DNA from: Parasitella parasitica NRRL 2501
Taxonomy: Eukaryota; Fungi; Mucoromycota
Direction of reading: 5' to 3'
DNA length: 64,000 bases
Assembly: GCA_025201805.1 (NCBI GenBank)
Contig: MU619265.1
Location: forward strand, 83,892-147,891
Every line of letters starts with the position of its first letter. The stretch's first letter is position 1. The translations under genes and the position numbers were made by a program. This document shows positions 2,959-41,156 of this stretch, in pieces. Under the pieces are notes generated by a model, which ran no database searches, was not told the origin of the DNA, and was given only the letters and a program-made list of their open reading frames with translations.

Positions 2959-3146
2959 TTTTTTATTTTTGTATATATTTATTTATTCAATTAAGCTTCC
3001 AATAGTGTATATATGTGTTTACAAAAAGAAAACAAAACAAAGGGTGGGGGGAGTGGGAGCTATGTGATATTGTCAAAAACGGCAAGGAAGGCAGAAATTG
3101 AAAGAGTCACAAGGAACTATAATCCACCTGAACAGCAGCTAGGAAA

Positions 3147-3944
3147 CTACATGCCTACCTGATCCATCCAATCTACAGCTTGTTCGAATCTGTCTGCAGT
3201 ATCATTGGGTACAATGTGGTCAATCCAGTTCTCCAAAAAAGCAGGTGCATCTGAATTGGATAGCATCAACAATGGAAAATGGGGTTCAAATTCACTAGCA
3301 GGGTATTTCCGCAACAACTCCAAGGCAGTATGATTATCCTGATCATCAACCATCATCAAGCCAGAGACGGGCTTATTGGATACATATTTCTGCGAAATAC
3401 GCCATGCAACTTGACCGAAGCTAACCATCAAAGGCGGAAAAAAAGAAAGTTCTGCAGTAGCTTGACTCAATTCTAAATTGTGTTGGATGATACATATATT
3501 GATATGAAAGAGGAAGTTGGGGGGGGGGGGAAGGAGGGAGGAAGAGTTGATAATAGCATTGAGTGCTAATTCACTGCATGTATTTACCTTTATAACATGT
3601 CTGCAAAGGTTCCTGTCCCTCAGGTAACTCGATGTATGCTTGCACGCTGGAATAGCCTAATTCGCTGAATCTTTTCTGCCATAAACAAGGTCTTAAAATG
3701 GCACATGTGTGTAAAAAAAATCAGTTTCAGCAAAATAATAAAATGATCTAAATCGTGGTTACACTTTGTCAGTTCTATTTGTCCTCAACAAGAGAATTGG
3801 TGTTGGTCTGTGTATTTCGCAGGTTTCAGATGCATTGCAATTTGTAATCGTGATCTTGTCTCGTGAGATTAATCTATTGAATATTAGTCGCGTATGTTGT
3901 TTGCCTAGTAATTTAGTCGATGTAGTAGTAGCGATAGGAAGCAT
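3147..3944 (-). CDS. Uncharacterised, probably mitochondrial protein with a degenerate alpha/beta-hydrolase-like core (about 3 exons)
   Basis: ORF pieces 3759-3944 and 3147-3470 joined through a middle exon with GT-AG introns. Basic/hydroxylated N-terminus; PPLMVSFGQVAWRISQKYVSNKPVSGLMMVD resembles the region around the nucleophile elbow. Confidence 0.55.
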
Positions 3945-5173
3945 ATTTTATAGGGAACTAGTGATGTTATGATGGTGAATATAGAACAAAAAGAACAAAA
4001 ACAAAACAAACCAAAATTAGCAACACCAACCAAAATTATGGCTTCAAGCGGGGGGGGGGGAGGTGGTTGAGGGTTAAGTTGGGTTAATAAAAAACCTTAA
4101 TGATGGTCAGCATTCCCGCCTAACACACATGATAATAGAGGCGCAAGTCTATAATATGATCTAGATTAAAGGCCTTATAAATATGCACATAGTCCATCGT
4201 TTCATTACATGGCCATTTTAGGTTGAACTACAAATAAGAGCCCAAATAAAATATTCAATACGAATGTTCCAATTATGAATATCAAACAAATCTCTGCTTT
4301 TGTTTCGATAGCTATTATAATTTCGTTTTCCAACAACAGAGTCTATACTACCGACTACCCAAACCTTCATTAATGGAAGAATAAAAAGCTTAATTCATTA
4401 TAGTCATCCCTTTTTCCGCGAATAAAATTGTAGATTTCAAGACTAAATGTATGCATGATTGCCTTAATGGTACATCTCCAAACAACATTTTTAAATTCAA
4501 AGGGAATTATAGCGTATAAGAGCTTATAAATACTAGATTTTTGTGTCAGATACCCTCTTACATCATACATTGCTTATTTTGCAGTGAACTAGCTACAAAG
4601 AGTCCTTGTTAAACTTCGGTTTTTACACACCAAAGACTTGCTTTCTCTCATGGAGAACAATACCAGCACTGATGTTGTAGACATCGAAACACGCCATTTC
4701 AGAATGATTTTTTTTTACAACTTTGATGGCTCAAGTATTAGCCTTTTTGACCGATCTGAGGACTTGGAACCATACCAAATGGTTTCTCAGGACCCATACT
4801 TGGGACTTGATGCATCTTTGCTACAGAAATGGGCAGTGAAAAAATCATTAATTTTCGACAATTTTTTATGAGCATCTACAAGTTTGACCTAAAAAAAAAA
4901 GAGGCTAAGGTTTGCAAGTAATGCTTGAAAACTTTTAGTTCAAAAGTGTATTCCTCTTTAATCGCAAATTGCTCAATATTTTCTTTTACAACTTTATTTT
5001 CAATACACACCATTAGATGCGCAATTAAATGATCTACGAGTGGACTTGGCCTGAAAGGATGTGTTAAATTGGTATCATTTAGAGAAATTGGCGAGAAAGC
5101 CCAAAAAAAGTTCGGAAAGTGCCACAGTTGCTCAATTTTAGAAGAAAAACACAGCGGGCATTCATTCATTTTG

Positions 5174-5200
5174 CCTCCTCCTCCTCCTCCTCCTCCTCCT
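5174..5200. repeat. (CCT)n microsatellite
   Basis: About 9 CCT units seen directly. Confidence 0.9.
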
Positions 5201-5529
5201 CATAATCAAGCTCAAAGCAAGCATTCGTGTATTGATATACGCATGCCTAGTAGAAGTCAAGGTTTAAGGCTGAAAATAGTCGAAAAGCTCATACCCAATC
5301 CGGTATACACAGCACAGCGTTTTAAACTCTCCAACAGCAAAAATATACTTTGTGTAATATGATACAAGTAGTAAATTCACCTAATTCAAACATTTAAATT
5401 ACTGATATTTCGTAAACGTGATCCTATATTAAGCAACAAAATATATATTGTGTTACTCGAAATAAGCATCTAATAATTAACGCCCTTCTTTTTCCTTAAT
5501 ATATATACATAAACTTACAATTTCTCAAT

Positions 5530-7178
5530 ATGAATTTATCACATACAACTCGCACCCATGGAAATGTATTTCACCAACGAAGACCGTCGTTGACAACAGC
5601 ATGTCCACCACCCGACAGGAGAAAGGATTCTGATCTGAATAAAAGAAGGGGCAGCAGCCAATATACGCTCATAACAAATCGGAAATCCTGGGTCAACAGA
5701 ATATTCAACATGCCTGCTATACAGTTGGTTGGATGGGCTTATCTAATTGCATGCTTTTGTCTGTCTACAATTCACCTAGTGGGCTCGTTCTCATTATTGG
5801 ATCCAAATGCCGGTATGTCAAGAAAAATGCATTTGCTTCTGTACAGCTAACAATGAGATTTATGCCAGTGAGAGAACCGAGAATAGATTGGGATAGAATA
5901 CTACTGGAAAAACAGCAAGCGACGCCATGGTCTCAATTAGATGGTATATTGCCAGAAACTCGTCTATCGAAAATGTTTAGCAAATCTATTGTCAACAACG
6001 GGTTTATTCGTCCTTATTGGTTTACAGCATCTACTCGACCTTCTAGAGAGGCGTTGACTCTTACAACAGTGGTTGAATCACGGGATTTAGAACATTTGAT
6101 TCAATTAGCCGAAATGTATGAAGGTATGAAGTATGCTATTGTTGTTGAAAGACAAGTCGTATAACATTTGTGTGTACATATATCGTATACAGGCCCTATT
6201 TCGGCAACATTGTTAGTGCCATCAACCAAGAACATCAACCATGAGCTATCCATTACACAATTGACAGCGATTCGCAATGAGTACGAGACAAACATTGCAC
6301 TGAGACGACATGTAGATATCCATCTTGTGCTTCAACCCGGTGGGCTCACAGAGGACGGGCAGGTGATTGCTACAGGAGGATACCAAGAAGCTCGCAACTT
6401 GGCACGTCTGTTCAGCCGCACAAACTACGCCGCACTTGTGCCAGTGGCAACCCTGTGGATGACCGATATCGCTCAATCGTTCAAAAGCGCGCTTCATTTG
6501 CTACAAGCAGGCGACTTGCTTATTATCCCTACGTTTGGATTCCCCAATTACAAAGGCGTAGATACGAAATCATGGCCGCTTGATAAGCAATCCATGATTG
6601 AGTGGGTAGACGGTGGTGATATGGGCTTATTGGATTACAATTACGAGTTGAACAACGGGCCTACTTCTTATTCAACATGGAAAGAAGCCAAGAAACCTTA
6701 TCTTGTGCCAAACTATGACTACAAATACGGCCCCATCTACATTTCAGCCAAATCCAATCATCCTTGGTAAGCCGAGTCGACTCATAATCCGCTCGATACC
6801 GTACTAATGAAACAATCTATTTTACGCATACAATGTAGGTGCGAAGAAAGGTTCGAAGACGATTTGTCGTCATGCATCTACAATGCTTATTTAGCAGGAG
6901 CTAATCTATGGGTCAGCCATAGTGATTTTGCGATCAGAACTGGTCAAGAGCCGGCCAACACACTGTATACGCCACAGCAGCGGAAGATCCAAAACAAAAT
7001 TGCTCGCAGATACCGCATCGAGCAGTGCGTATTTTATGCTCGGCAATTCGATCAGCGTGGTACATTTAATTCTGAAAGAGCAGAACACGTCAAACAAGAG
7101 TGTTCAAAGGCCCTGTTGAGCCTGCAGAAAGAAAAGATGATATCAGATATTATTGCAAAAGAGGATGGCCGGTACTAG
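5530..7178 (+). CDS. Glycosyltransferase family 49-like type II membrane protein, multi-exon
   Basis: TM segment (LVGWAYLIACFCLSTIHLV) followed by GPISATL, HVDIHLV, ARNLARLFSRT, W/CEERF and YLAGANLWV motifs typical of fungal GT49. Confidence 0.75.
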
Positions 7179-7502
7179 TCTGTTGCATAGAAAATTGTAA
7201 ATAAGTAACAATAATAATAAAAGACTCTGATTCATGTACTGATTGGAACCCTTACTTCCATGTCAATCGGAATTGCATCTTTCACTCCAGACTCCATCCA
7301 ATCATACAGTGTCATCTTTCCGTTTCTTCATATTACACATTCTGACTTTTATGTTTTTCCTTTTTCAATACAGGCCTTTTGGCAATGAGGAGAAGGAAAA
7401 TTTTCGTTATATTTTAGCCTCGCTTGTTGCATATGTTCTTTTTCTTCTTTTCTTTCTTTAGTAACTTTTTTTTTTGTTTTTGTTTGCACAAGAGAAACAA
7501 AA

Positions 7503-8048
7503 ATGGCATCAACAGCGAGCTCAGCAGTATCCAAGAGTGCTCTTCGTAAATTCATAGATTCGCCAGCTGGTCCCAAGACCATTCATTTTTGGGCTCCTGC
7601 CATGAAATGGGTAAGTAGATGGATATAGCGATGGATTTCTCGTACGCGTTACGATGGGCCATGTAGATGCTCATACCAGTCAATTAGGCTCTAGTCATTG
7701 CCGGTATCGGAGACATGCAGCGTCCTGCTGAAAAGTTGAGTTTGACTCAAAATCTTTGTAAGTAGCAAAACTGGTATAAAAGCTCGGCGTTAACACGTTG
7801 CTAGCCTTGATGATGACCGGCCTTATCTGGTCTCGTTACTCTATGGTTATTATCCCCAAAAACTATTCTCTGTTGGCAGTCAACATTTTTGTGTTTGGTA
7901 CTAGCTCTATTCAATGTTCTCGTATTTGGAAGTAAGTTTTATGATGGGTTTGGTTATGGCATCTTATTGAACAGCGCCAATCGTTAGATATCGTCAAACT
8001 GAGGAATATAAGCAACAACAAAAGCAATTGGAACAAAAGCAAGCATAA
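7503..8048 (+). CDS. MPC2: Mitochondrial pyruvate carrier subunit 2 (4 exons; absent from the ORF track)
   Basis: Hand-spliced: MASTASSAVSKSALRKFIDSPAGPKTIHFWAPAMKW/ALVIAGIGDMQRPAEKLSLTQNL/SLMMTGLIWSRYSMVIIPKNYSLLAVNIFV...; stop at 8046-8048. Confidence 0.92.
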
Positions 8049-8558
8049 AAGCCATATAAAGTATTTAAATGTATAGTAATAAATTTTTCTTTTTTTTTTT
8101 TCTTGGTACATAAAGTAACAGCACTACCCGACTTTCCCCCACTCATTACCGCCCTGTAGCACTAGACTTGCAACCGTAAAAAGATTCCTACAAAGTGAGT
8201 CAAGTGGTGAATACCGAATACGAATTGCATTAGCGTTTATCTTTGAAATGATGCTTGACTTTTGATACTGTCCAAACAAGCGAACGTTCCATCGTTCAGA
8301 AGACCATTATTACATCTTGCCGGATTTTCTATTTTACCTCATCAGGTTCAATGTTTATGAGGGTATTTCCGTACTACCTACACAACTTTTAAGACATACT
8401 TGATTTGGGCTACCACCACAGTAGTTTAGGTTTTTCAAGATGTTCGTTATATATTGTAGAGTATATTGTACAGAGGATTTCTTTGTTTATTTATGTTTAT
8501 AGATGATTGATGACAAACTATATCTTTTTTTTGTGGTTTTATTTACATTTTACGATTA

Positions 8559-11500
8559 CTACCATGGAACTTGGTCATCATCATCGTCGCTATCGTCTTT
8601 TGAAGGGTGTCGATGTATATTCTCATATACAGACTCGTAAGGATATTCTACTTCATTGTCTCCGTCTGGAGAGTAACCCTCTTGTTGCTTTTGATTCAGT
8701 TGAGAAGAACGAGGTCTCTCAGCATCATCATCACCATGGTTATCGTCATCGTTATCTCCCAGTCGAATAACGTCAATGCCTTGCTTTACCCCACTTGAAC
8801 TATCATCATCGTTATCGTTATCGTTATCGTCATCGTCATCGTCATCATCATCAAATCGTATAAGTGAGCTATCGTGTAACGCCTGTGGCTGTTGCTGTTG
8901 CTTAGGCGTATGGCCATGCATCGAAGGTTCAGGGCTAGGGCCACTTCCCATATTGATCAAGTAAGCATCCTCAAATGAGAGGGACGAGTTTCGGTCTAAA
9001 AATGATTTGTTTGTCGCAGAGGGTGAGGGAGATCCATTCATGGCTGCATTGGCACTCGACGACAGCCATTTGAGGTTTGTAGCAGGGCTATTGCCCATTG
9101 AGTTGCTGGAAGGCGAAAACGACGTTTGCATTGCTTTGGATATATTGTCTACATACATTGTTAGTAAAAAAAAAAAAAAAAAAAAAAGGTTCATTCCTCG
9201 GTATATACGCCTACCCTCTAACTCTGCTAATGCGTCCTCCATATTTTCCTCGGCGCTGTCATTTGCAATACGAGTAGTTGTATTCTTGACACGATCAATG
9301 CGGCTGGAGACGGGCTCGGGCATGCCTTTCAACATGATCATGGTATCCGTATTGGGTATAATTCCTGCATGGAGTAGACGCTGCAAATCTTTCGTCTCTT
9401 GGTATTTTTGAAAGATGAATTGGTGCCGCGTCCATAAGGCAGGCTCATCGTTCGTGTAGGTTGTAATTTCAGCATTCGAGAGCCAAAGCTTCTTTTTGCG
9501 CGTATCAACAGCAAACGCATTTTTCTGGCTATTGCTGCTTTGCTTGTTCTTCTTTTTCTTCTGGTTGTTTGCATGCGGTTCAGGGCTGGTTTCTTCTGGA
9601 GGTGAACAGGACGATGCAGAGTCTACGCTCAAACGCACCTCGTCCCACTCAACATTCCTGGCTACTCGCCACTCTGCCACATCTTCTTCTTTGAGCGATA
9701 AATCCAACTTTTCTAGCATTCGTCCGTTTTCTCGCTTCTTAACAACCGTCTTAGCCACCCAACAACGATGCAGCGTCAAAACGCCGTCTGGATGGAAGGA
9801 ATACATGTCCTGGTATCCAATCTCATCATTGATCATCTTGGTAGAGTCATCGTATTCCTCATCAAATCCAAACATCAGTGTGTCGCTGCCTGAATTCTTG
9901 TCCCATTTCTTGGATTGCTGGCTGCTGCTAGTTGGCATATAAGGAATATGACTCATGCTGGAACCGAACGAGCTCAACATGCTCGTAGCTTGCTGTTTGA
10001 TGGAGCCCAGCGGATTTGCATTTGGCGAATCAGAGTTTGAGGACAAAGAGGTGTGAGACGAAAGGCTGCTTTTATACACGCTGTTGTTCACAAGGTAAGG
10101 AGATTTGGAGGCTGTAACAAACATGGCGATGATCTTTGCCTTGGGTTCCTTAGCTGTATTGCGACTGACAAAGGCAGACGGAGGAGGCATCATGGAAGAA
10201 ACATACTGAGGAGGTGTAGGGCCATAATAGCCGTGAGAATAACCGCTTCCGTTCTGCTGCTGCTGCTGCTGCTGCTGGCCAATAAATTTGCCTAGGTCGT
10301 CCTGAGAAGAATTAAGGCTGTTGCCTGGCATTTTTCTGCGCTGTTTAATGCGAATAACTGAATTCAGCACGGTTGCTTTCGGTTTGGCCTTGCTGTTGCT
10401 GCTGGCCATCAAAGGATGATAGACAGGGTTGTTCACTTTGCCATGCACATGTCCCGATATTTCAGGTTTGCCACCGTAGGGGTTGATGGCGTAAACATGA
10501 GTGGTGCCTCTTGCAGTCGTGATGGCGCACCATGTGGAATCAACCGAGAATTGGCAGTCTACAACTTGAGCATCCGTAATCCCTCTTGATAAACTATACA
10601 GATGAGAAGCGTTACCGTGCACCGTGTTGGCCAGAATGCCAAATATATGAAATGTATGGCCTTGTTTCGAAGCAGACATAAGCAGTGTCCCCGCTTGGTT
10701 GAATGTGAGGCAGGATACAGGGTGTGAATGCGGTCTAAAATGTGCAATGGTTGACAAGGACAGGTTCCTTGTGGGTGTCTTGGGCAGCTTTAGAATATCT
10801 CTAATCATGATCTGTGTGGGCAATATGCGTGAGTCATTGTATCGAGGGCATGAATCAGGCAACTTACCATGCCAGATGGCACCATCTTCTTTGCTGAATT
10901 CAAAGAATTGCTTGTATTCAAGTATATATTGTCATTGGGCGAGCCGTTTTGAATATTAGTTTTCCTGCTGGAGGGGCTCGATGGATCGTACATTTCTTGC
11001 TGCGGTGGCCCTTGAGGATGTGGCTGTAGTTGATTCCCAAAGTAGTTTTGCAGTGTGTTGAACCCAAACTCGCCCAGCGTCTTCATCCCACTAACGACTT
11101 CCTTTGCAATGTCCTTTGCGGCACCTTTTACATCCTTGTCGCCTTGTAACACATTATAGCTTGTTAGGGAGCTCATGACTGGATCTGAATTCAAAACCGC
11201 AGTATTGGTAGCATAAGCGATAAATCGAGAACCCAGTGTGAATATGGGGCCTTGGCTTGGGTCATGGTATATATCGGTCAACGGTGATGCAAATGGAGTG
11301 TAATCTGCAGCAGATAAAATCCGGATAAATGAGCGATGGCGGGATGAACAGCCCTAAGGGGAGGAGGGGGGAGAAAAGTGAGTAAAACATTGATGATGAT
11401 GATAGTGATGTGATGTGTTGGTGAAACTTTACCAGTGCAATGACCTTGTGGTTACTTTTTATGCATGTGACTATGGCTATATCATCATTCTCTTCGTCGC

Positions 11501-15710: not shown

Positions 15711-16596
15711 NNNNNNNNNNNNNNNNNNNNNNNNNNNNNNNNNNNNNNNNNNNNNNNNNNNNNNNNNNNNNNNNNNNNNNNNNNNNNNNNNNNNNNNNNN
15801 NNNNNNNNNNNNNNNNNNNNNNNNNNNNNNNNNNNNNNNNNNNNNNNNNNNNNNNNNNNNNNNNNNNNNNNNNNNNNNNNNNNNNNNNNNNNNNNNNNNN
15901 NNNNNNNNNNNNNNNNNNNNNNNNNNNNNNNNNNNNNNNNNNNNNNNNNNNNNNNNNNNNNNNNNNNNNNNNNNNNNNNNNNNNNNNNNNNNNNNNNNNN
16001 NNNNNNNNNNNNNNNNNNNNNNNNNNNNNNNNNNNNNNNNNNNNNNNNNNNNNNNNNNNNNNNNNNNNNNNNNNNNNNNNNNNNNNNNNNNNNNNNNNNN
16101 NNNNNNNNNNNNNNNNNNNNNNNNNNNNNNNNNNNNNNNNNNNNNNNNNNNNNNNNNNNNNNNNNNNNNNNNNNNNNNNNNNNNNNNNNNNNNNNNNNNN
16201 NNNNNNNNNNNNNNNNNNNNNNNNNNNNNNNNNNNNNNNNNNNNNNNNNNNNNNNNNNNNNNNNNNNNNNNNNNNNNNNNNNNNNNNNNNNNNNNNNNNN
16301 NNNNNNNNNNNNNNNNNNNNNNNNNNNNNNNNNNNNNNNNNNNNNNNNNNNNNNNNNNNNNNNNNNNNNNNNNNNNNNNNNNNNNNNNNNNNNNNNNNNN
16401 NNNNNNNNNNNNNNNNNNNNNNNNNNNNNNNNNNNNNNNNNNNNNNNNNNNNNNNNNNNNNNNNNNNNNNNNNNNNNNNNNNNNNNNNNNNNNNNNNNNN
16501 NNNNNNNNNNNNNNNNNNNNNNNNNNNNNNNNNNNNNNNNNNNNNNNNNNNNNNNNNNNNNNNNNNNNNNNNNNNNNNNNNNNNNNNNNNNNNNNN
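15711..16596. other. Assembly gap (N run)
   Basis: Run of n. Smaller gaps occur at 392-401, 35987-35996 and 55297-55466. Confidence 1.
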
Positions 16597-16928
16597 CCAT
16601 GGTTTGGCTAGTACCATGAGTTTCGTCTTCAACTAGTTAAAAAAAACTATAAATGCAAAACTATTATACTCCCCTTTTCTCTGAATCCATAAACGTAAGT
16701 TTTTCCATACCAATATGACCCATTTTTGATTGTTAATGTTGTAGCTTTCAATTGAATATGATATCAAGAAAAACCTGAATGTGAGAAAAGAAAAAAATAC
16801 ATCGTTGGTGGCGTGTTTTTTCTTTGTTAAATTTTAGTCATGTGACACACAGTAGGTCGGTCGGTGTGGGTCTGGCCATTACAAAAACCATCAGGTTATG
16901 CATGCTCTAGCTTCTGCAGGTTGCTATA

Positions 16929-18919
16929 ATGTCAGATTATTTCATTAAAACAAAACGCCCTATTTGGAACATTGATGATGCGTTTAGTTCATTCAAAGCA
17001 AAGTATCCAGACTTGACTGTAGAGCAGCAGCTGACAAGTTTCCATGACTTTTTGAAAAAGCAAGATGATCCTGTAGTGCAATCGTGGTTATTAAAGTGGA
17101 AATCGTTTTGCAAAAAGCCAGAAAAATCCAAGAAGATGCCACACAATCGAATTAATCTTGATATGAGAAGATCGGTTAATCAGAACGTTACAATAGGAAA
17201 CGTGAAAAACTACAACAACAAGAGTGAACTAGAAGACGATGTTGAGCGAGCACCCCAAATCAACAGGTAAAAGAAGTAAAAATACTAAATAAATCTCTAA
17301 TATCCTTTTTGTGATAGTGATAGTGAAGGCAATCGCAGCGACAAACCTTTTGATAATCTGTTTAGCGAAGACGAGGAGGCTGCAACTGTGGATAAGACTG
17401 ATGTAGATGATTTTAAAAGAGCAGTGTTTAAAGCTGGCTATCAATATGCAAGTGTTTTCACTTTCTAAATAGAGTATTTTACCAAATTCTGAACTATATT
17501 CTCTATATTTAGTTTAAAGAAGAATTATCGTTATCCACTATATCAAACCTCAACAAATTATTCAAAGGATTTAGTCCTACCACATTAGAGGGGTTCCTGG
17601 ACATGCTCTCGTATGAATTACTTAACAAAGAAATGAATATAAATGAGAAAAATACACTCAAGTAAGTTTATATATTCAAAACACATTGCTAATAATTGAT
17701 AGATCAATGCGTTTAGACTTTCATTGAGCCACATTATTTCTTTCGTTGGTCCTACTGCAGTAGTTTTCGAGACATTTTTCTCGAAACAAAATCTCACCGC
17801 CAAAAATTTGTTCGAAGAGGTAAAGGCCAAGGTACCTTTACTTCCTGTTGGAATGTCGGAAACAGCCAAGCAAATGATTGATGATATACTTGATGTAAGT
17901 TAAATTATTGATCAATTTATTAATTAATAAATAGCCTATTTTTTATTAAGACAAACATTCACAGGTTGATGGAAGCGAGCATTTATTAAGACAAACGATT
18001 AATGAAAAAAAAGGCAAAGTTGTTAGAAACAACATATGATGGTGAAGAGATGCAAGTCCTCGATATCATGGAGTTTATTGTCCAATGCACAAAAAGGAAG
18101 AGCTATAGACACACCAGCGAATTATCATGCTATCGTATGAGTGCCCATATTTTTGACCTCATATTGAATGACACATCTCTCCAGATGATCGAGTAAGTTT
18201 ATTGCAAAAGTAGCTCCTATATTTACTCCCTTTCGATGCTAATATCTATAATACCTTGTAATTAGTGGCGAAAACTGTTCTCAGGCAACGAAAACTGCTC
18301 AACAAGACAACCAAAGAATATGTTCTGATGATGATGATACTAAAAAGTTGATTGGAAGGAAAATCGATCTTATTATTGCTAAATATGGAGTCGAATTGAG
18401 CAGTAGTGAATGGAAGAAAAGTCAGACCACTCCCGCCACGATTGAGCAGCAGCGTGTAAAGAATTTTAGATCAAACTGTGCCATTTTGAACAAGATCTTG
18501 AATTTACCAATAAACGATGCTAGTGAAATTCATACGCTTGGAATGGACTGGCTTGGTAAGTTCGAAATTAGCCATTTGTGTATCAACATTTGTAATTCAC
18601 CTGCGCTATTCTAGGTATGGTTGGGTGTATGTACGCATTTGACACCTATGAAAATATTTTTTCGATTCATTATGCTGGTGATCTCGTTATACCGGAAAAC
18701 ATCGGTACTCTTTATCTTTTAAAAGAAACACTTGATCTATTATATTCGTTCAAACATCATCATGTAAATTTAAGCAGAAGCATTCAGTCTTCCGTAGAAA
18801 AATCAAAAATAGCTGATCAATTAAGAAAGCTACGCCCTGAACCAATTCGTACGAAGAGAGAGATCGGTCCAGTTGTTTTTTTCACACCCTCCAAACGTCA
18901 AAAGAAAACAACCAAATAA
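16929..18919 (+). CDS. Multi-exon uncharacterised protein with a C-terminal PD-(D/E)xK (restriction-endonuclease-like) motif
   Basis: Exons join through introns with gtaaaa/gtaagt donors and one GC donor. Motifs TSELSCY, GENCSQATK, GRKIDLII...VELSSSEWKK...QQRVKNFRSN, GMDWLG; basic C-terminus PSKRQKK. Confidence 0.6.
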
Positions 18920-33770: not shown

Positions 33771-34529
33771 GCTAAAATTTGTAGTCTAAGGAAAAAGTGA
33801 AGGATATGTTAGGAAGATAACATTTAGAAATTAAGTGGAGCTTTTATACCGATATGGAAGATGTCCTATTCCAGGGGCGGAAAGGGCATTAGCCAGACCC
33901 TTAATTTCCCGCCACTTACTTGGTATATCTCGCGTAATCTTATCGATCGTAGCAGACACTTGAGTATGTTATCATTGACTAAAGATATTAAACTATTAGC
34001 AACAACCATCCAAAATAAATGTTTTCAGTTGCTATCAATTTCTTTTCGTAATTTATCAACCCAATCCACGTATCTAGATATTCAAATGTGCTGATGTATA
34101 AATCTTTGGTAAATCAAACGTAAATTCCCGTATTCTCCCGCCAAATAACATTTCAAGCTTTTGCCACTTTATTATTCTGAAATGTTTATCTGGAACATTG
34201 ACCTTGAAATATTTGATTCCCTTATCATCATCATTTTAATAATTTACAACAACGGCATCTTCCCGAATTAAATAGCTAATCAAAGCGTCATAAGAAAGCT
34301 GTTCCTCTTAATTTGGAAAGCTGTATTTTGGACTTATCTTACCGGAATGTATGTGATTTATCTAGATAAAAAAAGCATACAATTGAACAGATATGTTGTG
34401 ACATGAAAAATGAGTGCCTATCTCTGCTCATATTTGTGGATTCTCATTTTATACAAAGATCGTTCCAGGACAACCATTTTCTGCGGCTATGACTACGTAA
34501 GTTTTGATTCTTTCAGATTGGTTTGTTTG

Positions 34530-37500
34530 GCGCTCGATTAGCACAAGTGGGCCTATTTAATGTTTCGGTGTTAATCATGCTTTAAAGTGAGCTTTACATC
34601 TGCTTTTATTGTTGAGTCTATGAAAAAATTAGCTACACCACTTAAAATGTATTCTTCTGATACACAGAAGAGGATTTATAAAAGTGCATTGGAAATTAAT
34701 TTAAAGGCAGTGGATAGGTGTGCGAGACATCTTTCCCAAAACACGGTATATGTAGCGACAAATGGACACTATACAGTACCATAACTAAAAAAAAATATTT
34801 TTAGAAAAAAAATATTTTATTTCCTTCAATTAAAAATGCAAAATAGTCGAAAACCTTCCTAATTCAGAAGGTAATAACTGAATATTTCCCTACATTTGAG
34901 ACAGTAAAATTAAATCCTGACTTGCCACGAAATCTCGTTATTATTAGAGCCCTGAAGTTAGAAATCATGTATAAACCTTCACATTTTCGATTTATTCTAT
35001 TAAAAAACAATACATATCAACCATTATTTAGCTTGTTAATAATGTGCCAACTATGTCATTCGCTTTTAATGGTCGCAAAAGACGCCTTATTGCTATTAAT
35101 GATGAAGAAGAACAAATCCCAGATCAGTCGTGAGTCTTGCGGACAAATCAGCACTTGAACAGCCAATTTACTTTCATGATGCATGCACTCAACAACAATC
35201 ATAACCAAGAAGTTATGCATAAATCTCACCATAATTCTCTGTTAAATGCAATGTCTTTTCAGTTACATCAGCAAAATCGACGACTAAAGACAAGACAGCA
35301 ACGAGACATAATCCAAACATTGAAAACAAGCCAGTGATTCCTGAAATTGCAGCTACAGCTTGCTTTGGCAGGCTAGGGACACGGTAGATTGATAAATTGA
35401 GATTCTGGACCAACAAAGGTAAAAACTGGTTGCAAACACGACATCCCATCCAAAACTCGAAGGTTTTCTTTTCTTAGCGTTATTGTATGTCTGCCGCCAA
35501 ACATGAAGTTCAAAAAAAACAGTTAGAATGTTACGTTGCAGGCTCAGCTATCATCAATCCTCCAGCTTCGTTTCTAAAGCCATCCAGTGGGCTTCGAAGC
35601 AAAGTCCAGACATCCAAAGAGAAAACGGATTACTGGAATGCCCTGCAGTTGCAATTTCGAATCTGTCTTCTATGCTCAATTGTACATTGCAGAAAGAAAA
35701 ATGGAGACTATGATGAGCTGTATATCTCTTTATTGAAAAGTACTAAAATACATAAAGGCGTAGTGCAAGAAGCAGAAGCAAAAATCAAGAGTCCAGGAAA
35801 AATCACAACGATGTTAAGCACTGTGTATACACAGAATAAAAAGGCTGGAAGCCCAAAGAAGAATTATGAGTACTGGACAGAATTTGTGGAGAAGAACTTC
35901 CAGTCTCTTTTGGATTTACCAGAAAAGAATGATGGTAGCAATGATGATAAAGACAGTGAAGATAGTGAAGATGAAGACAATGATGANNNNNNNNNNTTTG
36001 CTGAGTATACATTTGAATCTAATGACGGCAACATTGAACTTGTCTACGATGGTGGAAACAGCATTGCGTCAATATTGCCAGAAGGGTATTTAGAGAAAGA
36101 CATCACTGTACCAAAGCCATTAGATTCCAGCTCTCTTCACAATGACGAGTTCAATGCTTATTATCAATCGCTGTTTCTAGAACCCCACTTGGAACAAATG
36201 CACTCAACATACTATGGTCAAGTGGGTATTGAAGAGTCCACCCTTGAAAAGTCGCCTCTCCACAAGGCAATTGTAAACGTTTTGGGTCGTGATGAAGCCA
36301 ACCCACATCAAAATTTGTCCTCGCACATTATGAAGATGGCTCGCCAACAGTATTGCACGAATCTTCGTATTATGTGGTCCGAAAATACTATTGTCAGCAA
36401 GCTACTTAGAAAGCTCTTGAACTTCTTGCTGTTGATTCATTTATCTCCCGATCAAGACCATGCTATCAAGGCGAAGAAGACTGAAAGAGAATCGACCAAG
36501 CTTCGAAAAAACCATAAAGGCAAACAGAGAGTGACAAATTGCAGTATCCCAATGGCAGAAATTTCAGTGCTGAACAAGACAAAAAATGGAAGACGAAAGC
36601 TGTTTTCTGATGAAAAGAAGCTAAAAGCCAAGTATGAAGAGAAAGGGAAGCATGAGGCAACAGATATGTGCCAAATGAGAATCGATACATATGAGCAAGT
36701 ACTTAAAAGAGAGGTAGGGGTCGTCTGGTTTTCAAAGGAAGTCATAATGTCGTAACTCGGAATGTATGTAGCAAGCGGAAAGAGACAGAAATCCAAGACA
36801 GCAACAGCAACAGCAGCAGCAGCAACAGCAGCAGCAGCAGAAGCAAGGAAAGCGTCAAGAAAGCGATACTGATGATAGAGAGGACTACGAAAAAGGGAAC
36901 AATACTAATGTCTCTAGAAAAAGAATCAGTCAGTTAGTCAACATTGCAAGATCAGCATTGTTTGCCACGCAAGATATCACAGACGCATACCTCCAAGATC
37001 AGGATGAACACATCACCACACAAGAATCTGCAACAATCATCAAAATTACTAGCTTCATTCAGCCATACATACCATCAAGCGAGACTTATCATCTCCTTCC
37101 ATGCCAACTCAAGTTCATCTTGATGGCAAACCAAGTACTGCGCTCTATCGGCTATGAAGGCCAAGTTGCTAAATTTATGCACTTTTGTGCTCGAGAAAAC
37201 TTTCAAAACGGATGCATCTTCGAGATTTTCAAGGCAATTACGTAAAGCATAAAGACGCCAACGCTAAAAAAGATGCCGTCTTTAGCAGTTTCTTTAGCAT
37301 TGACAAACTGAAAAGCGTGACATCAAGCTATGGTATGGAGTTTGTAAATAGAATACACATCTTACCAGGATCGAAGACTGTCAGATTGTATGGCAGCATT
37401 GGCCATTTCAAGTCTAGTCGCAGGAACCCAGAAACAAAAAGCAAGCTGAGCCATCATACAGATGACGACCAGTTACGAGCTATGAAGGCTCAAAAGAAGG

Positions 37501-39029
37501 AGCTCGATAAGTCCCTCAGGGATCGCACAAACGAATTGTATCAGTTTCTTCAAGACAACGACAGTGTTCGTGGTCTCAAGAAAGCTTGGAGAGCCAACTT
37601 TGAAGAGCAAAAACAATGTTATGAGAAAGTCAAAGATGCCCAAGAAAGTGACAAAACTTCTGATCTTACGAAGACTTGGAAGGCTAAAGTTGAAGAAAAC
37701 GACGAGCGCTATCGGAATGTGGAATCAGTAAAGTTAAGGATTAATGGTGGCTATTCGAGATACAAAAGAGAGGCTTCAGTCCCTGCGGCGAGAGATTTAT
37801 GAATATGGAAAACCTTTAGTAGATGAGTTAAAAAATCTAATACCATATAAGCCCTTCACTGTGGGTAGCAATAGATGCTGTAGAAAGGTAGAAGAATGCA
37901 AGCTGGACGAAGACATGGATCGGACAACAGCCGTGTTCAGTGGCACGGATAATGGCATTATAAAGACTACCGAGATAGTGTTTTTTGAAGTCGATCGTTT
38001 CGCATCACACTTGAAGCTGTACAATAGGTTTCAGATCTTGGGTATGTAACTCAGTGCCTTTGAACACATATGTATATAGTTAAAGAAACTGATTCTATAT
38101 ATGTTTGCCTACTATAGAGGATACCAAAGATGCAGACAATGCTGATGGTTCAAATACAGATGAAGCTGATATTTTTGAACATTTGACTCTACCTCGCGCT
38201 CTCACTTTGGGCTCCAAGCAAATCAACCAGATACCGGCTTGGCTATATTTATAAATTCGTTTATTCGGAAAAAAAAGACCACAGAAGACAGGTACAGAGT
38301 TTTGGAGATGGAAAAGGATCTTGGAAAAAAATAGTCTTTATCAATGCTCAACATCTGATGGTTTGGAGCAAGCCTATTCGCATCACACTAATGCGCGCGC
38401 ATCGTTGCGCTCATTCTATTACAACCAATCCATGATAAAAAGAAGAAGACGGCTGGAACTCTCTTACAGAAAAGGCTCTGACAGACTAGCAGCTTACGAG
38501 AGAAAGAGTTGTTGCAAGAAGCCGATTATGTTTGTCGGTGATCGTGGACACGGATTCGGCTCTCGCATCAAGGGACACAGACAATTTGGTGGGTTCTGGA
38601 AACAGCAGCGACATAGCCGCTATACACCAACTCTGATAACAAATGAACATAATACGTCGCAAACATGTGTTTTCTGCTTCCACAAGCTCTCTCATCCTGT
38701 GGCTGCTCTCAATGGCAAAATACAGCGAACAGCCGGTTCATTTCTTTTCTTAAATCCCGAATGCCCCAATGCTTTCAAAACAATGTGCCGCGACCAAGTC
38801 CCAGCACTTGCAATTGGTCTTGCTGATTTTGGTTGCCTTTTGTTTGGAGTAACTTTTCCCTGCTTCGACCCAAACCCCACCACTGCCAAGCGCATACAAT
38901 TCAACAATTTAGCCCTATCTTTTTTGTACAGAAAACAGATACTGGGCTCGCCTTTCGATGGAGGCAATACTCTTTGAAGGTTGGCAAACAAATATAAAAC
39001 GTGGAGATAACTCAATATTAATCGAGCGC
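34530..39029 (+). mobile_element. Non-autonomous Fanzor-carrying DNA element with 11-bp terminal inverted repeats
   Basis: GCGCTCGATTA at 34530-34540 and its exact reverse complement TAATCGAGCGC at 39019-39029. TG lies on both outer sides (34528-34529, 39030-39031). The repeats enclose the Fanzor-like gene. Confidence 0.6.
35487..38977 (+). pseudogene. Fanzor1-like (eukaryotic TnpB-family) RuvC endonuclease, frameshifted
   Basis: RuvC-I AVFSGTDNG; MFVGDRG...SRIKGH; RuvC-II plus Zn ribbon ITNEHNTSQTCVFC...LNPECP; RuvC-III RDQ..ALAI. Introns at 36714-36771 and about 38042-38116; frameshifts near 37190, 37750 and 38230-38320. Degraded coding sequence probably extends upstream to about 34840. 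Confidence 0.85.
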
Positions 39030-39049
39030 TGCATCTTTGACTTTGACCT
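38944..39049 (+). ncRNA. Candidate Fanzor omega-RNA (scaffold about 38944-39029 plus about 20-nt flank-derived guide)
   Basis: Overlaps the ORF 3' end and the right inverted repeat. Hairpin GCCTTTCGATGGAGGC (38950-38965); GCTCG (38946-38950) is complementary to CGAGC (39023-39027). Boundaries are inferred. Confidence 0.45.
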
Positions 39050-39503
39050 TTTAATACTATTGGGTAAGTGACACTCCCACTTATAAATTGTTTATAAAAA
39101 GTAACCAAAATCATCTGTTTCTTCTTTCGGAATTTAGCTTGATATACCGTTACAGTATATATGAACGTAACAATTTTGTAATTCTATTGCTCATAACAAA
39201 TGTGTTTGTTTCTCTACTTACAAATCGCAAGAACCAAGTTGAGGATCAGCAAATATGTAATAGGCTTCAAGTCCATCAGTACATCCAGCGTCCATTAAGG
39301 TTAGCTGGCTCTTCACAAGATCAAAGAAAGAGGCAACAAATTATAATAAAGACAAAGAAGCAATATCCTTGATCACATCTGTATACCTTCATAATATGTC
39401 ACTATAAAACATACACATAATCTGAATATGTTGTTCTCATACGAATTAGCAGGATCATTTATGAAAAATATCGAATGCATAAATTTTCCAAGTCTAATAT
39501 ATT

Positions 39504-41156
39504 CTATTTTGTCGCTACAATGACCATATTTCTTGGCGAAGTGACAGGGTCAAATAGAGGCCATAACCATACGCCTTTAGTTGGACTGTCCTCGATAGTC
39601 TCATCAAGATAAAGGTAACGATCCACAAGAATAATGCTTTCTAAAATTGGTCCAAGCAGCACTCGTAAAGTCCATAAGATAGAGATTTGTTTGTCTACTT
39701 GTTTCTCTTTACATTTTTGATAGTATGTTTCTGCCTCATCCGAGGTAATGGTATCTTCAGGGTATTTTAGTCGTTTCAAAGCTGCTTTTACATAAACTGG
39801 GAAAGATGTGAAATCTCTTTTTTTGTTCAATCGACCAACAACAGGAGCTACAGATGCTTCTGCCAACCCTTTTTCTACCATAATGAACTGATAATCTATA
39901 AGCCTAACCGGAATAACAAGTGATAACTTATATTCTAACTTACCTGAAGTAATGCTCTGAAGAAATGATGCTCATAGGCTATTAGAGTTTCTTCTTGTTG
40001 ATCAATCCATCTTGCAGGCGCCTGACAGGATAGCATTTTTGCAGTTGGACCCAGCTTGAATTCAGTCTTTCGAACTGTGCTACTAAGAGGAAAGCCTACA
40101 GTTATATCCTCTTCCGTTGAATTGTCTTTTTCCGTCAAAAAATGATAACAACAGCCAACATTGACGAAACAAGTTATTTCAGGGCTCAACGTAAAAAGTC
40201 TTAGCATCATGCTTGCTAAATCACCACAGGTATGTAAGCCTGTTAACAACCATTCCTCGTCTTGATTATTGTTATCGCTCCATTTTGTGAGTATGCTTGA
40301 AGCATTTTCAGGTGTTATGAATTCAGTGACATGGTGTAATTTGAGGACTTCTTTGTCAAGAAACTTGACGGCCTGTTTATCAAACTTTTTTGCTCCACAG
40401 GTTTGAATTTCAGAGGAATCGACGGCTAGTACTTTGAGGTTGCTTTTGAATGCAATTGATCTCGACAAGTATCCTTGTCCTGCTCCCAAATCAACTATAG
40501 AATGAACCTGATGATCTTTTGCTAATTTTTGAATGACAGGTGTCATGCGTTCTACCTACAAAAAAAAATAGACGGTTATAACCAAGCCATACCTATGGAA
40601 ATGCTGGCACTGTACTTCATGAATTTTTTTATCAACCATGCCTGGCAATATACGTTTTTCAATCTTGCTTTTCACTTGTTCCGCTAAAACATATCACATG
40701 AAATGTCAGTCTAAAAAAAGTAGCACTTAAACTATGACTTCACTATACATCCTGCTAAATTGATACGAGGTAATGCAATCTCTTTAGCATCTCTAATAAA
40801 ATCTCTTAGGGAAGCAGGCCAGTGTTCCTGATCAAATAATTAGTACGATTACAAGAGAGTACTAGATCAATTACATTGACATCTAATCCTGATGTTATAT
40901 TAATAATTGAGTCTATCCATTCTTCGTGGCTTATGGACCCGTTAGGTGGTAAAAGAGCCTCTCTCCATTCTTGATCGAGGATGTTCCATTGACCACAGGT
41001 CAAGAAATCTACAATATGAAGTGTAGTCCATTGCTGATATCTTTCAATATAATTCAGCAAAGCATCCATGTACTCAGTGGGCGTTAAATGACAATATTTT
41101 TTAGGTAATTGCAGTTTCTCCAAAGGCATTGCATTGTCTTTTGAGGGATCCATCAT
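39504..41156 (-). CDS. METTL25/RRNAD1-like methyltransferase (Methyltransf_32), multi-exon
   Basis: GMVDKKIHE, IVDLGAGQGYLSR, LTGLHTCGDL, VNVGCCY, LGPILESIILVDRYLYL, LFDPVTSPRN. Confidence 0.9.

Follow-up and report, generated by a model that had tools for sequence, protein, structure and literature searches.

Where the DNA that carries a Fanzor gene begins and ends, and what moves it, are the questions raised by one locus in a 64,000-nucleotide stretch of the fungus Parasitella parasitica NRRL 2501 (contig MU619265.1, positions 83,892 to 147,891 of the forward strand), here called the window, whose numbering is used unless a contig is named. An initial annotation, made from the sequence of the window alone, had recognized a nuclease of the Fanzor1 type (TnpB-like) and placed it in a 4.5-kb transposon bounded by inverted repeats. 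Comparison with other copies in the same genome shows that the element instead occupies 34773-39158 and belongs to a family whose members measure about 4.55 kb. It is probably a decayed, Fanzor1-only and non-autonomous relative of the Crypton-type elements, which are moved by a tyrosine recombinase (YR). The protein clade itself was listed in 2013; what is added are defined ends for the element, a recombinase that may be its partner, and signs that its right end is a spliceosomal intron. A long Mucorales Fanzor1 clade, known since then without ends or superfamily, would thereby gain termini, a target word and a candidate mobilizing enzyme, and its transposition would become testable.

The product of the gene is a Fanzor1 of this long Mucorales clade, and its nearest described members are MCi-10 and MCi-8 (Bao and Jurka, 2013). 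The three motifs reported by the initial annotation are where it had located them (GTDNG at 37942-37956, NEHNTSQTC at 38642-38668 and RDQ at 38789-38797), and they form the D...E...D triad of a RuvC domain. The Glu of NEHNTSQTC stands six residues ahead of the first Cys of a CVFC zinc ribbon (the two motifs together cover 38642-38677) and RDQ follows, which agrees with the published rule that the Glu precedes a C4 zinc ribbon by about six residues and an RD motif comes next (PMC3627910; PMC13565253). With the C-terminal open reading frame (ORF) as query, phmmer found no Fanzor in the Protein Data Bank (PDB), and in Pfam there was only a weak match, to Cas12f1-like_TNB (E 0.024). The profile and structure comparisons with TnpB and Fanzor proteins that had been proposed as a check both led to SpuFz1, the Fanzor of Spizellomyces, and confirm the nuclease assignment. 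In the first, the 292-aa last-exon ORF of a copy in better condition (L006) served as query for an exhaustive HMMER search, and 407 relatives were found, the named ones coming from Parasitella, Mucor, Halteromyces and Entomortierella. A profile built from 20 of the 407 (A1) was searched against the PDB and matched SpuFz1 (8gkh) at E 3.1e-6, in an alignment that spans the Glu together with the zinc ribbon and RD motif; Cas12f came next. The second comparison used a natural full-length homologue and not the window protein, namely the 937-aa Mucor hiemalis protein P0046, which blastx aligns in pieces across 35979-38797. The AlphaFold model of P0046 averages a pLDDT of 65, with good quality in its C-terminal half, and Foldseek placed SpuFz at the top of its PDB matches (E 1e-5, probability 1.00), followed by Cas12o, GtFz, Cas12X, PpFz, Cas12f, Fanzor2 and TnpB.

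The solved Fanzor1 enzymes SpuFz1, GtFz1 and PpFz1 (8gkh, 9ceu-9cf1) resemble the Parasitella protein in overall fold and in the RuvC triad, whose Glu likewise stands six residues ahead of the zinc ribbon. However, the Parasitella protein is about twice as long, identity between these enzymes and the P0046 model is only 12-14%, and PpFz1 ranks no higher than eighth among the structural matches despite its origin in the same species. The solved enzymes also ride on elements with inverted ends and have an unspliced guide RNA. Much closer are MCi-10 and the related MCi-6 to MCi-9 of Mucor circinelloides (PMC3627910), which belong to the same protein clade, carry near-identical FVGDRG and NEHNTSQTCVFCFHK blocks and encode about 1,100-1,200 aa in 3-4 exons. 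The clade is thus not as novel as was first supposed, since MCi-6 to MCi-10 were already listed, without ends, by Bao and Jurka (2013). MCi-10 was given one copy, undetermined ends and no superfamily (PMC3627910), whereas in Parasitella tens of copies allow the two termini and the target word to be defined and point to a candidate autonomous partner.

The true ends were read from these copies. Window 34330-39230, which holds the element as first drawn together with its flanks, was searched against the genome of Parasitella parasitica itself and matched in 96 pieces, spread over more than 40 contigs. The homology always begins at about 34770-34810 and stops at 39158-39162. Homology between copies therefore starts some 240 bp inside the left of the two 11-mers that had been taken as terminal inverted repeats and continues 129 bp beyond the right one, and the limits of the element are 34773 and 39158 rather than 34530 and 39029. 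Read depth in the DNA run X1 shows the same pattern: it is 143-241, the single-copy level, over 34300-34821 and 39172-39500, rises to 4,000-10,600 in the interior and reaches about 16,000-17,900 at both ends. The right-end pattern GCTTG(A/C)TATACCGTTACAGTAT has 36 genomic sites, against none for a reversed control, and the left-end pattern CAGTATCATAACTAAAAAA has 24, against one for its control. Short pieces around such sites yielded a junction alignment of 36 right and 25 left ends. To the right, the flanks of different copies are unrelated from the first base on. To the left, they agree in an A at -1 (21 of 25), a pyrimidine at -2 (22 of 25) and an A at -3 (17 of 25) and are otherwise unrelated. 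The exact heptamer ACAGTAT closes 29 of the 36 right ends, and the remaining seven differ from it by one or two bases. The aligned junctions thus place a directly oriented ACAGTAT at either limit of the element (34773-34779 and 39152-39158) and indicate a preferred target close to ATACAGTAT. The left heptamer probably represents a target-derived copy of the recombination core.

The junctions are also informative in what they lack. No variable target duplication is seen across them, and inside the heptamers the two ends have no inverted similarity (best local score 11, below the shuffle mean of 12.2). The left and right ends of full-length copies lie 4.48-4.72 kb apart, and internal-deletion derivatives measure 0.53-2.3 kb. 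The right-end motif also terminates a second Parasitella Fanzor locus, and in MCi-10 the DNA record (...GTACCGTTACAGTAT; PMC3627910, supplements) carries it about 40 bases before the record ends, while no clear right-end motif was found at the locus of the Mucor hiemalis homologue. Five further sites (C153, C193, C1, C138 and C139; loci L061, L062, L081, L085 and L086) retain no more than the final 16-100 bp of the right end, behind unrelated upstream sequence, and those on C153 and C193 (27-100 bp) contain neither a transposase nor a Fanzor. They are either solo remnants or other families with the same terminal TATACCGTTACAGTAT.

Because the element has no inverted ends and no variable duplication, and shows the same word in direct orientation at both ends, it probably belongs with the Cryptons, in which a short direct repeat stands at both termini, one copy being the target, and neither inverted ends nor a duplication are present (PMC3212892; PMC13565253). 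The described CryptonF and CryptonS elements (Goodwin, 2003; Kojima and Jurka, 2011) have such a word (TATGG in CryptonS) and encode a tyrosine recombinase related to NDC10. In contrast to these, the Parasitella element carries a Fanzor in place of the recombinase. As the initial annotation had stated, no transposase of its own lies within the window element, and its further proposal of mobilization in trans is very likely correct. PF16787 (NDC10_II), which represents the recombinase fold of Cryptons, matches the genome 45 times, and several of these matches accompany mapped end motifs: on C240 and C254 they lie between a left and a right end, and on C261 beside a left end. In these three sister elements (Table 1) the left end is 1.34-1.38 kb from the recombinase domain. 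The sister ends are identical to those of the Fanzor element at 19 of 19 bases on the left and 15 of 15 on the right, and in pieces of 229 bp about 60 bp of the left end are common to both before they diverge. The element is thus probably mobilized by the recombinase of such sisters. GCR1_C gave no match for this partner recombinase. Directly upstream of the left end of the C240 sister there is a different Crypton-type recombinase (C240:2385-3587; PF16787, 85 bits with its neighbours), and the two C240 elements are nested or adjacent.

A second type of recombinase (C125, C47 and C253) is linked to the Fanzor gene in another way. It has the sequence of window 34877-35127 in common with the Fanzor element, and also its first 29 codons (MS.AFNGRKRRLIAI..EEE), which are followed by the AT-hook RGRGRPKK and, on C47, by the NDC10_II domain. 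When the N-terminus of the C125 recombinase was used in a tblastn search, residues 1-29/30 were found in most of the Fanzor-element loci covered, including that of the window, and residues 3-29 or 7-29 in others. A search with the 133-aa recombinase N-terminus returned only a Parasitella parasitica BD408 gene model, which is 100% identical. Given these shared codons and the shared upstream sequence, the Fanzor gene seems to use the promoter and first exon of the recombinase gene.

On this evidence, movement of the family might proceed as follows. A recombinase supplied in trans would excise the element as a circle by crossover between the two heptamers, and the circle would re-insert at another ACAGTAT site, preferably one resembling ATACAGTAT. 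In intact copies the Fanzor and its guide RNA could then cut the emptied donor site and so cause the element to be copied back, by analogy with the model for bacterial TnpB. If so, the family would provide a clean natural case of a Fanzor paired with a tyrosine recombinase rather than with a DDE transposase. A precedent is MCi-2A/2D (Bao and Jurka, 2013; PMC3627910), likewise a Mucorales Fanzor1 element without inverted ends and associated with a Crypton-type recombinase. MCi-2, however, has a partial recombinase and a Fanzor within one element of 9-10 kb and shows 11-12 bp duplications of the pattern ATAATTNNNN (PMC3627910), while in Parasitella the two genes lie in separate sister elements and only the fixed heptamer is repeated.

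Several observations weigh against a Crypton-type origin. The repeat of seven bases exceeds the 4-6 bp described for Cryptons. The right end of the sisters matches that of the Fanzor element over only about 15-16 bp, and the link to the recombinase is made by coordinates, HMM matches and the 229-bp end pieces, with the catalytic residues unseen. The assembly contains no circle or tandem (right-left) junction, and neither such a junction nor an empty site is present among the joints listed from the reads. No empty site was recovered by other routes, and a single heptamer at unoccupied sites is inferred only. The best relatives of the flanking gene are just 88% identical, so a comparison of orthologous intergenic DNA would be pointless, and comparison of flanks among element loci gave element-internal matches only, because the right end is nearly palindromic. 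In addition, the heptamer at the occupied right junction is also that of the presumed empty site, and a short target-adjacent motif would be unable to discriminate between the two.

Other mechanisms were weighed against the same junctions. A single-strand mechanism driven by an HUH nuclease (of the IS200/IS605, IS91 or Helitron type), with insertion 3' of ACAGTAT and an element ending in the same word, would account for the lack of inverted ends and duplication, for the fixed word in the left flank and for the short A/T palindromes near the left end, and bacterial TnpB relatives are carried by IS200/IS605 elements. This is nevertheless unlikely: recombinase-type matches, but no HUH gene, were seen between these ends (Y1 and RepHel were not searched for in the genome), and the tandem junction missing from the assembly counts against this model as well. 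The Helitron signature in particular is not found, as the ends lack 5'-TC and CTRR-3' and there is no target between A and T; the right end reads ...ACAGTAT and the left flank holds a fixed heptamer.

There is little to recommend a DDE transposon whose inverted ends are very short or absent and whose insertion produces a target-specific 7-bp duplication of ACAGTAT. Such an element would explain the heptamer on both sides, and the preferred target is nearly palindromic, but the ends have no inverted similarity inside the heptamers, no DDE gene was found between ends of this kind, and a conserved right-end block, TACCGTTACAGTAT, continues, in each of three different families of Fanzor, past what would be the limit of the duplication. 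Mobilization by a serine recombinase, as in IS607, is very improbable. Fanzor2 elements, which likewise have neither inverted ends nor duplications, do rely on serine recombinases (PMC13565253), but the crossover of these enzymes is 2 bp and not 7, and the protein here is a Fanzor1. Finally, the 4.5-kb cut-and-paste element first drawn, with 11-bp inverted repeats GCGCTCGATTA at 34530/39029 and a TG duplication, can practically be dismissed: the inverted 11-mers and the TG on the outer side of each do exist, but the left GCGCTCGATTA lies outside the homology limits in single-copy flank and so cannot define a family, the right 11-mer belongs to the interior of the family (of 12 aligned copies, 6 have it unchanged, 4 have it with 1-2 substitutions and 2 have lost it), and exact inverted pairs of 11-mers spaced 3-6 kb occur 179 times in the 64-kb window, which makes such a pair near any gene unremarkable. 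Movement by a Crypton-type tyrosine recombinase thus remains the favoured explanation.

The right end of this presumed Crypton relative has a further peculiarity, in that the region between the stop codon and the terminal heptamer has the layout of a spliceosomal intron. A donor, GTTAGT or GTAAGT, follows right behind the stop codon, and the consensus acceptor, TTACAG before TAT, falls inside the heptamer. The same layout is found in a Mucor circinelloides relative (stop, GGTAAGC, about 170 nt, then TATACCGTTGCAG directly followed by TAC), and the second Parasitella Fanzor locus terminates in GTACCGTTACAGTAA. A sequenced joint is also available from run X7, whose RNA nature is a guess; its depth is zero over the flanks and not over the interior. 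One contig of this run matches the element up to 38979 and then runs on for 30 letters in the right flank of a 532-bp copy on C55. Between those two points the DNA of the C55 copy holds a 181-nt GT..AG segment, which is its whole right end; that copy is without the usual ACAG, and the acceptor used is the next AG, two bases into the flank. Other contigs of this probable RNA run extend from the right end into diverse flanks, and the 3' tail of the coding region is conserved at the nucleotide level. Against this stands the fact that the splice itself is seen in one contig of a run only guessed to be RNA. With that contig and the conservation of the layout taken together, we lean slightly toward the right end being spliced out as an intron.

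Since the acceptor lies inside the heptamer, splicing may set the scaffold of a guide RNA beside flanking DNA. Removal of the 176-nt right end would then make the guide, by joining the conserved coding tail to UAU and the sequence of the flank. A consensus fold of the 250 nt that precede the donor contains two hairpins, with compensatory changes at just 4 of 53 pairs in five sequences, and carries no weight either way. Should the splicing be real, Fanzor guide RNAs would be assembled by the spliceosome, which is relevant to expressing Fanzors as eukaryotic genome-editing tools; spliceosomal assembly of a Fanzor guide RNA was not found in the literature searched for this analysis. Bacterial IStrons, which combine TnpB with a group I intron, are similar in that transposon end, splice site and guide RNA overlap on one stretch (bioRxiv 10.1101/2023.11.20.567912), whereas in the Parasitella element it would be a spliceosomal intron that builds the guide. 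More speculative is a combined scheme, which we put forward only tentatively: ACAGTAT would serve at once as crossover core, 3' splice site (after ACAG) and neighbour of the guide target, the spliceosome would build the guide, and Fanzor1 would have spread among Mucorales Cryptons by way of the recombinase first exon. Another joint seen only in X7, from 39061 to 39129, skips 67 nt (depth 172) and, with a slack of two bases, fits a conserved GTAAGT donor at 39064; an AG acceptor is present only in copies with TTTCAG (e.g., C20), the window having TTTCGG. Some copies may therefore have a second small intron within the right end.

The gene of the window copy can be followed through four probable exons (Table 1) and is no longer intact, contrary to what its first description implied. 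The putative splice across 35130-35477 is out of phase by 1 nt in a phase test on the two joined exons; part of the family has an extra A after 35511, and the C233 copy is in frame at that point. The window copy differs from the majority of the family by losses of 55 bp at 37178, 8 nt at 37738 and 1 nt after 38228 and by a gain of 1 nt at 38325. The last two form a frameshift pair that yields a stop at 38252, and the letters missing at 37178 and 37738 are carried by most family members. The window copy is thus a pseudogene, and frame maps show that the seven other near-full-length copies mapped are all broken too. The N-terminal half of the Fanzor also contains a CAG/CAA (poly-Q) run at 36789-36851, which was skipped as a repeat in the read search, and an acidic Asp/Glu/Ser run at 35930-35986, with an assembly gap at its end.

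That gap is printed as ten N. In a comparison anchored on the letters on either side of it, 9 of 13 distinct paralogous sequences have 181 bp there, and four more decayed copies have 182, 173, 160 and 59 bp. Contigs of run X1 extend beyond 35985 with the first letters of the paralogues. From these lengths and contigs it follows that the two sides of the gap are not contiguous and that about 181 bp are missing. As 181 and 10 are equal modulo 3, the frame printed through the N run is true, and by eye the corresponding segment of the L002 paralogue is open. The youngest copies, 97-99% identical at their ends (C9, C25, C28, C40, C52 and C132; L033, L034, L038, L049, L053 and L054), have N runs of 1-4 kb in their interiors, while the window copy is filled apart from its ten N. 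Because the contigs of X1, X6 and X7 all break at 37176/37178, the interior of the window copy may be a composite of several copies made by gap filling.

Table 1. Features of the Fanzor element in the window and of three recombinase-bearing sister elements (window positions unless a contig is given).
Feature	Position	Strand	Basis or remark
Left 11-mer of the initial annotation, GCGCTCGATTA	34530-34540	+	Outside the element; no paralogue match left of about 34770; single-copy depth
Left heptamer, ACAGTAC (family consensus ACAGTAT)	34773-34779	+	Left boundary; 25 aligned left ends
Left-end region, CATAACTAAAAAAAA..., with two short A/T palindromes	34780-34850	+	About 60 bp common to recombinase-bearing sisters
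Probable first coding exon (MSFAFNGRKRRLIAINDEEEQ...)	35053-35129	+	Codons same as in sister-element recombinase gene; GTGAGT donor at 35130
Putative intron	35130-35477	+	Long frame opens at 35478, directly after a pyrimidine-rich stretch and AG
Fanzor N-terminal exon, split by assembly gap	35478-36713	+	Open frame; blastx to P0046 begins at 35979
Assembly gap, 10 N	35987-35996	.	About 181 bp hidden, in frame
Predicted 58-nt intron, GT..AG	36714-36771	+	Sequence and frame map; frame 0 to frame 1
Middle exon: poly-Q, coiled-coil region, RuvC-I GTDNG	36772-38041	+	Broken by 55-bp and 8-nt losses
Predicted 76-nt intron, GTATGT..TATAG	38042-38117	+	In phase
Last exon: RuvC-II NEHNTSQTC, zinc ribbon, RuvC-III RDQ	38118-38977	+	SpuFz1 profile match covers exon; stop 38975-38977
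Right-end region, candidate spliceosomal intron	38980-39155	+	Donor GT directly after stop; acceptor TTACAG at 39150-39155
Right 11-mer of the initial annotation, TAATCGAGCGC	39019-39029	+	Internal family sequence, 129 bp short of true end
Right terminus, GCTTGATATACCGTTACAGTAT, closing in ACAGTAT	39137-39158	+	36 genomic sites, control 0; flanks diverge directly after
Sister element on C240	Left end 4502; right end 7987		PF16787 matches 5840-6115 and 6180-6818
Sister element on C254	Right end 1331; left end 4729		PF16787 match 3090-3353 in 728-aa open frame
Sister element on C261	Left end 3036		PF16787 matches 679-1657

Some observations concern the spread of the family and the surroundings of this copy. 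Among runs X10-X16, which bear the same species label, several are nearly devoid of words from 37900-39400, and X10 has short diverged pieces of the element ends only; it may be that the Fanzor family is confined to certain strains or has expanded recently. In all three Mucor lusitanicus assemblies (L100-L102) the same Fanzor tail survives as a decayed relic, which keeps the donor behind the stop and has lost the right-end motif; its position, with an Arb2-domain gene on one side and a gene for a dynein light intermediate chain on the other, is the same in each. Beside the insertion in the window, about 350 bp from the element, an open exon of 125 aa (39504-39881, minus strand) has Mucorales relatives of up to 88% identity, one of which is named methyltransferase-like protein 25 (Choanephora).

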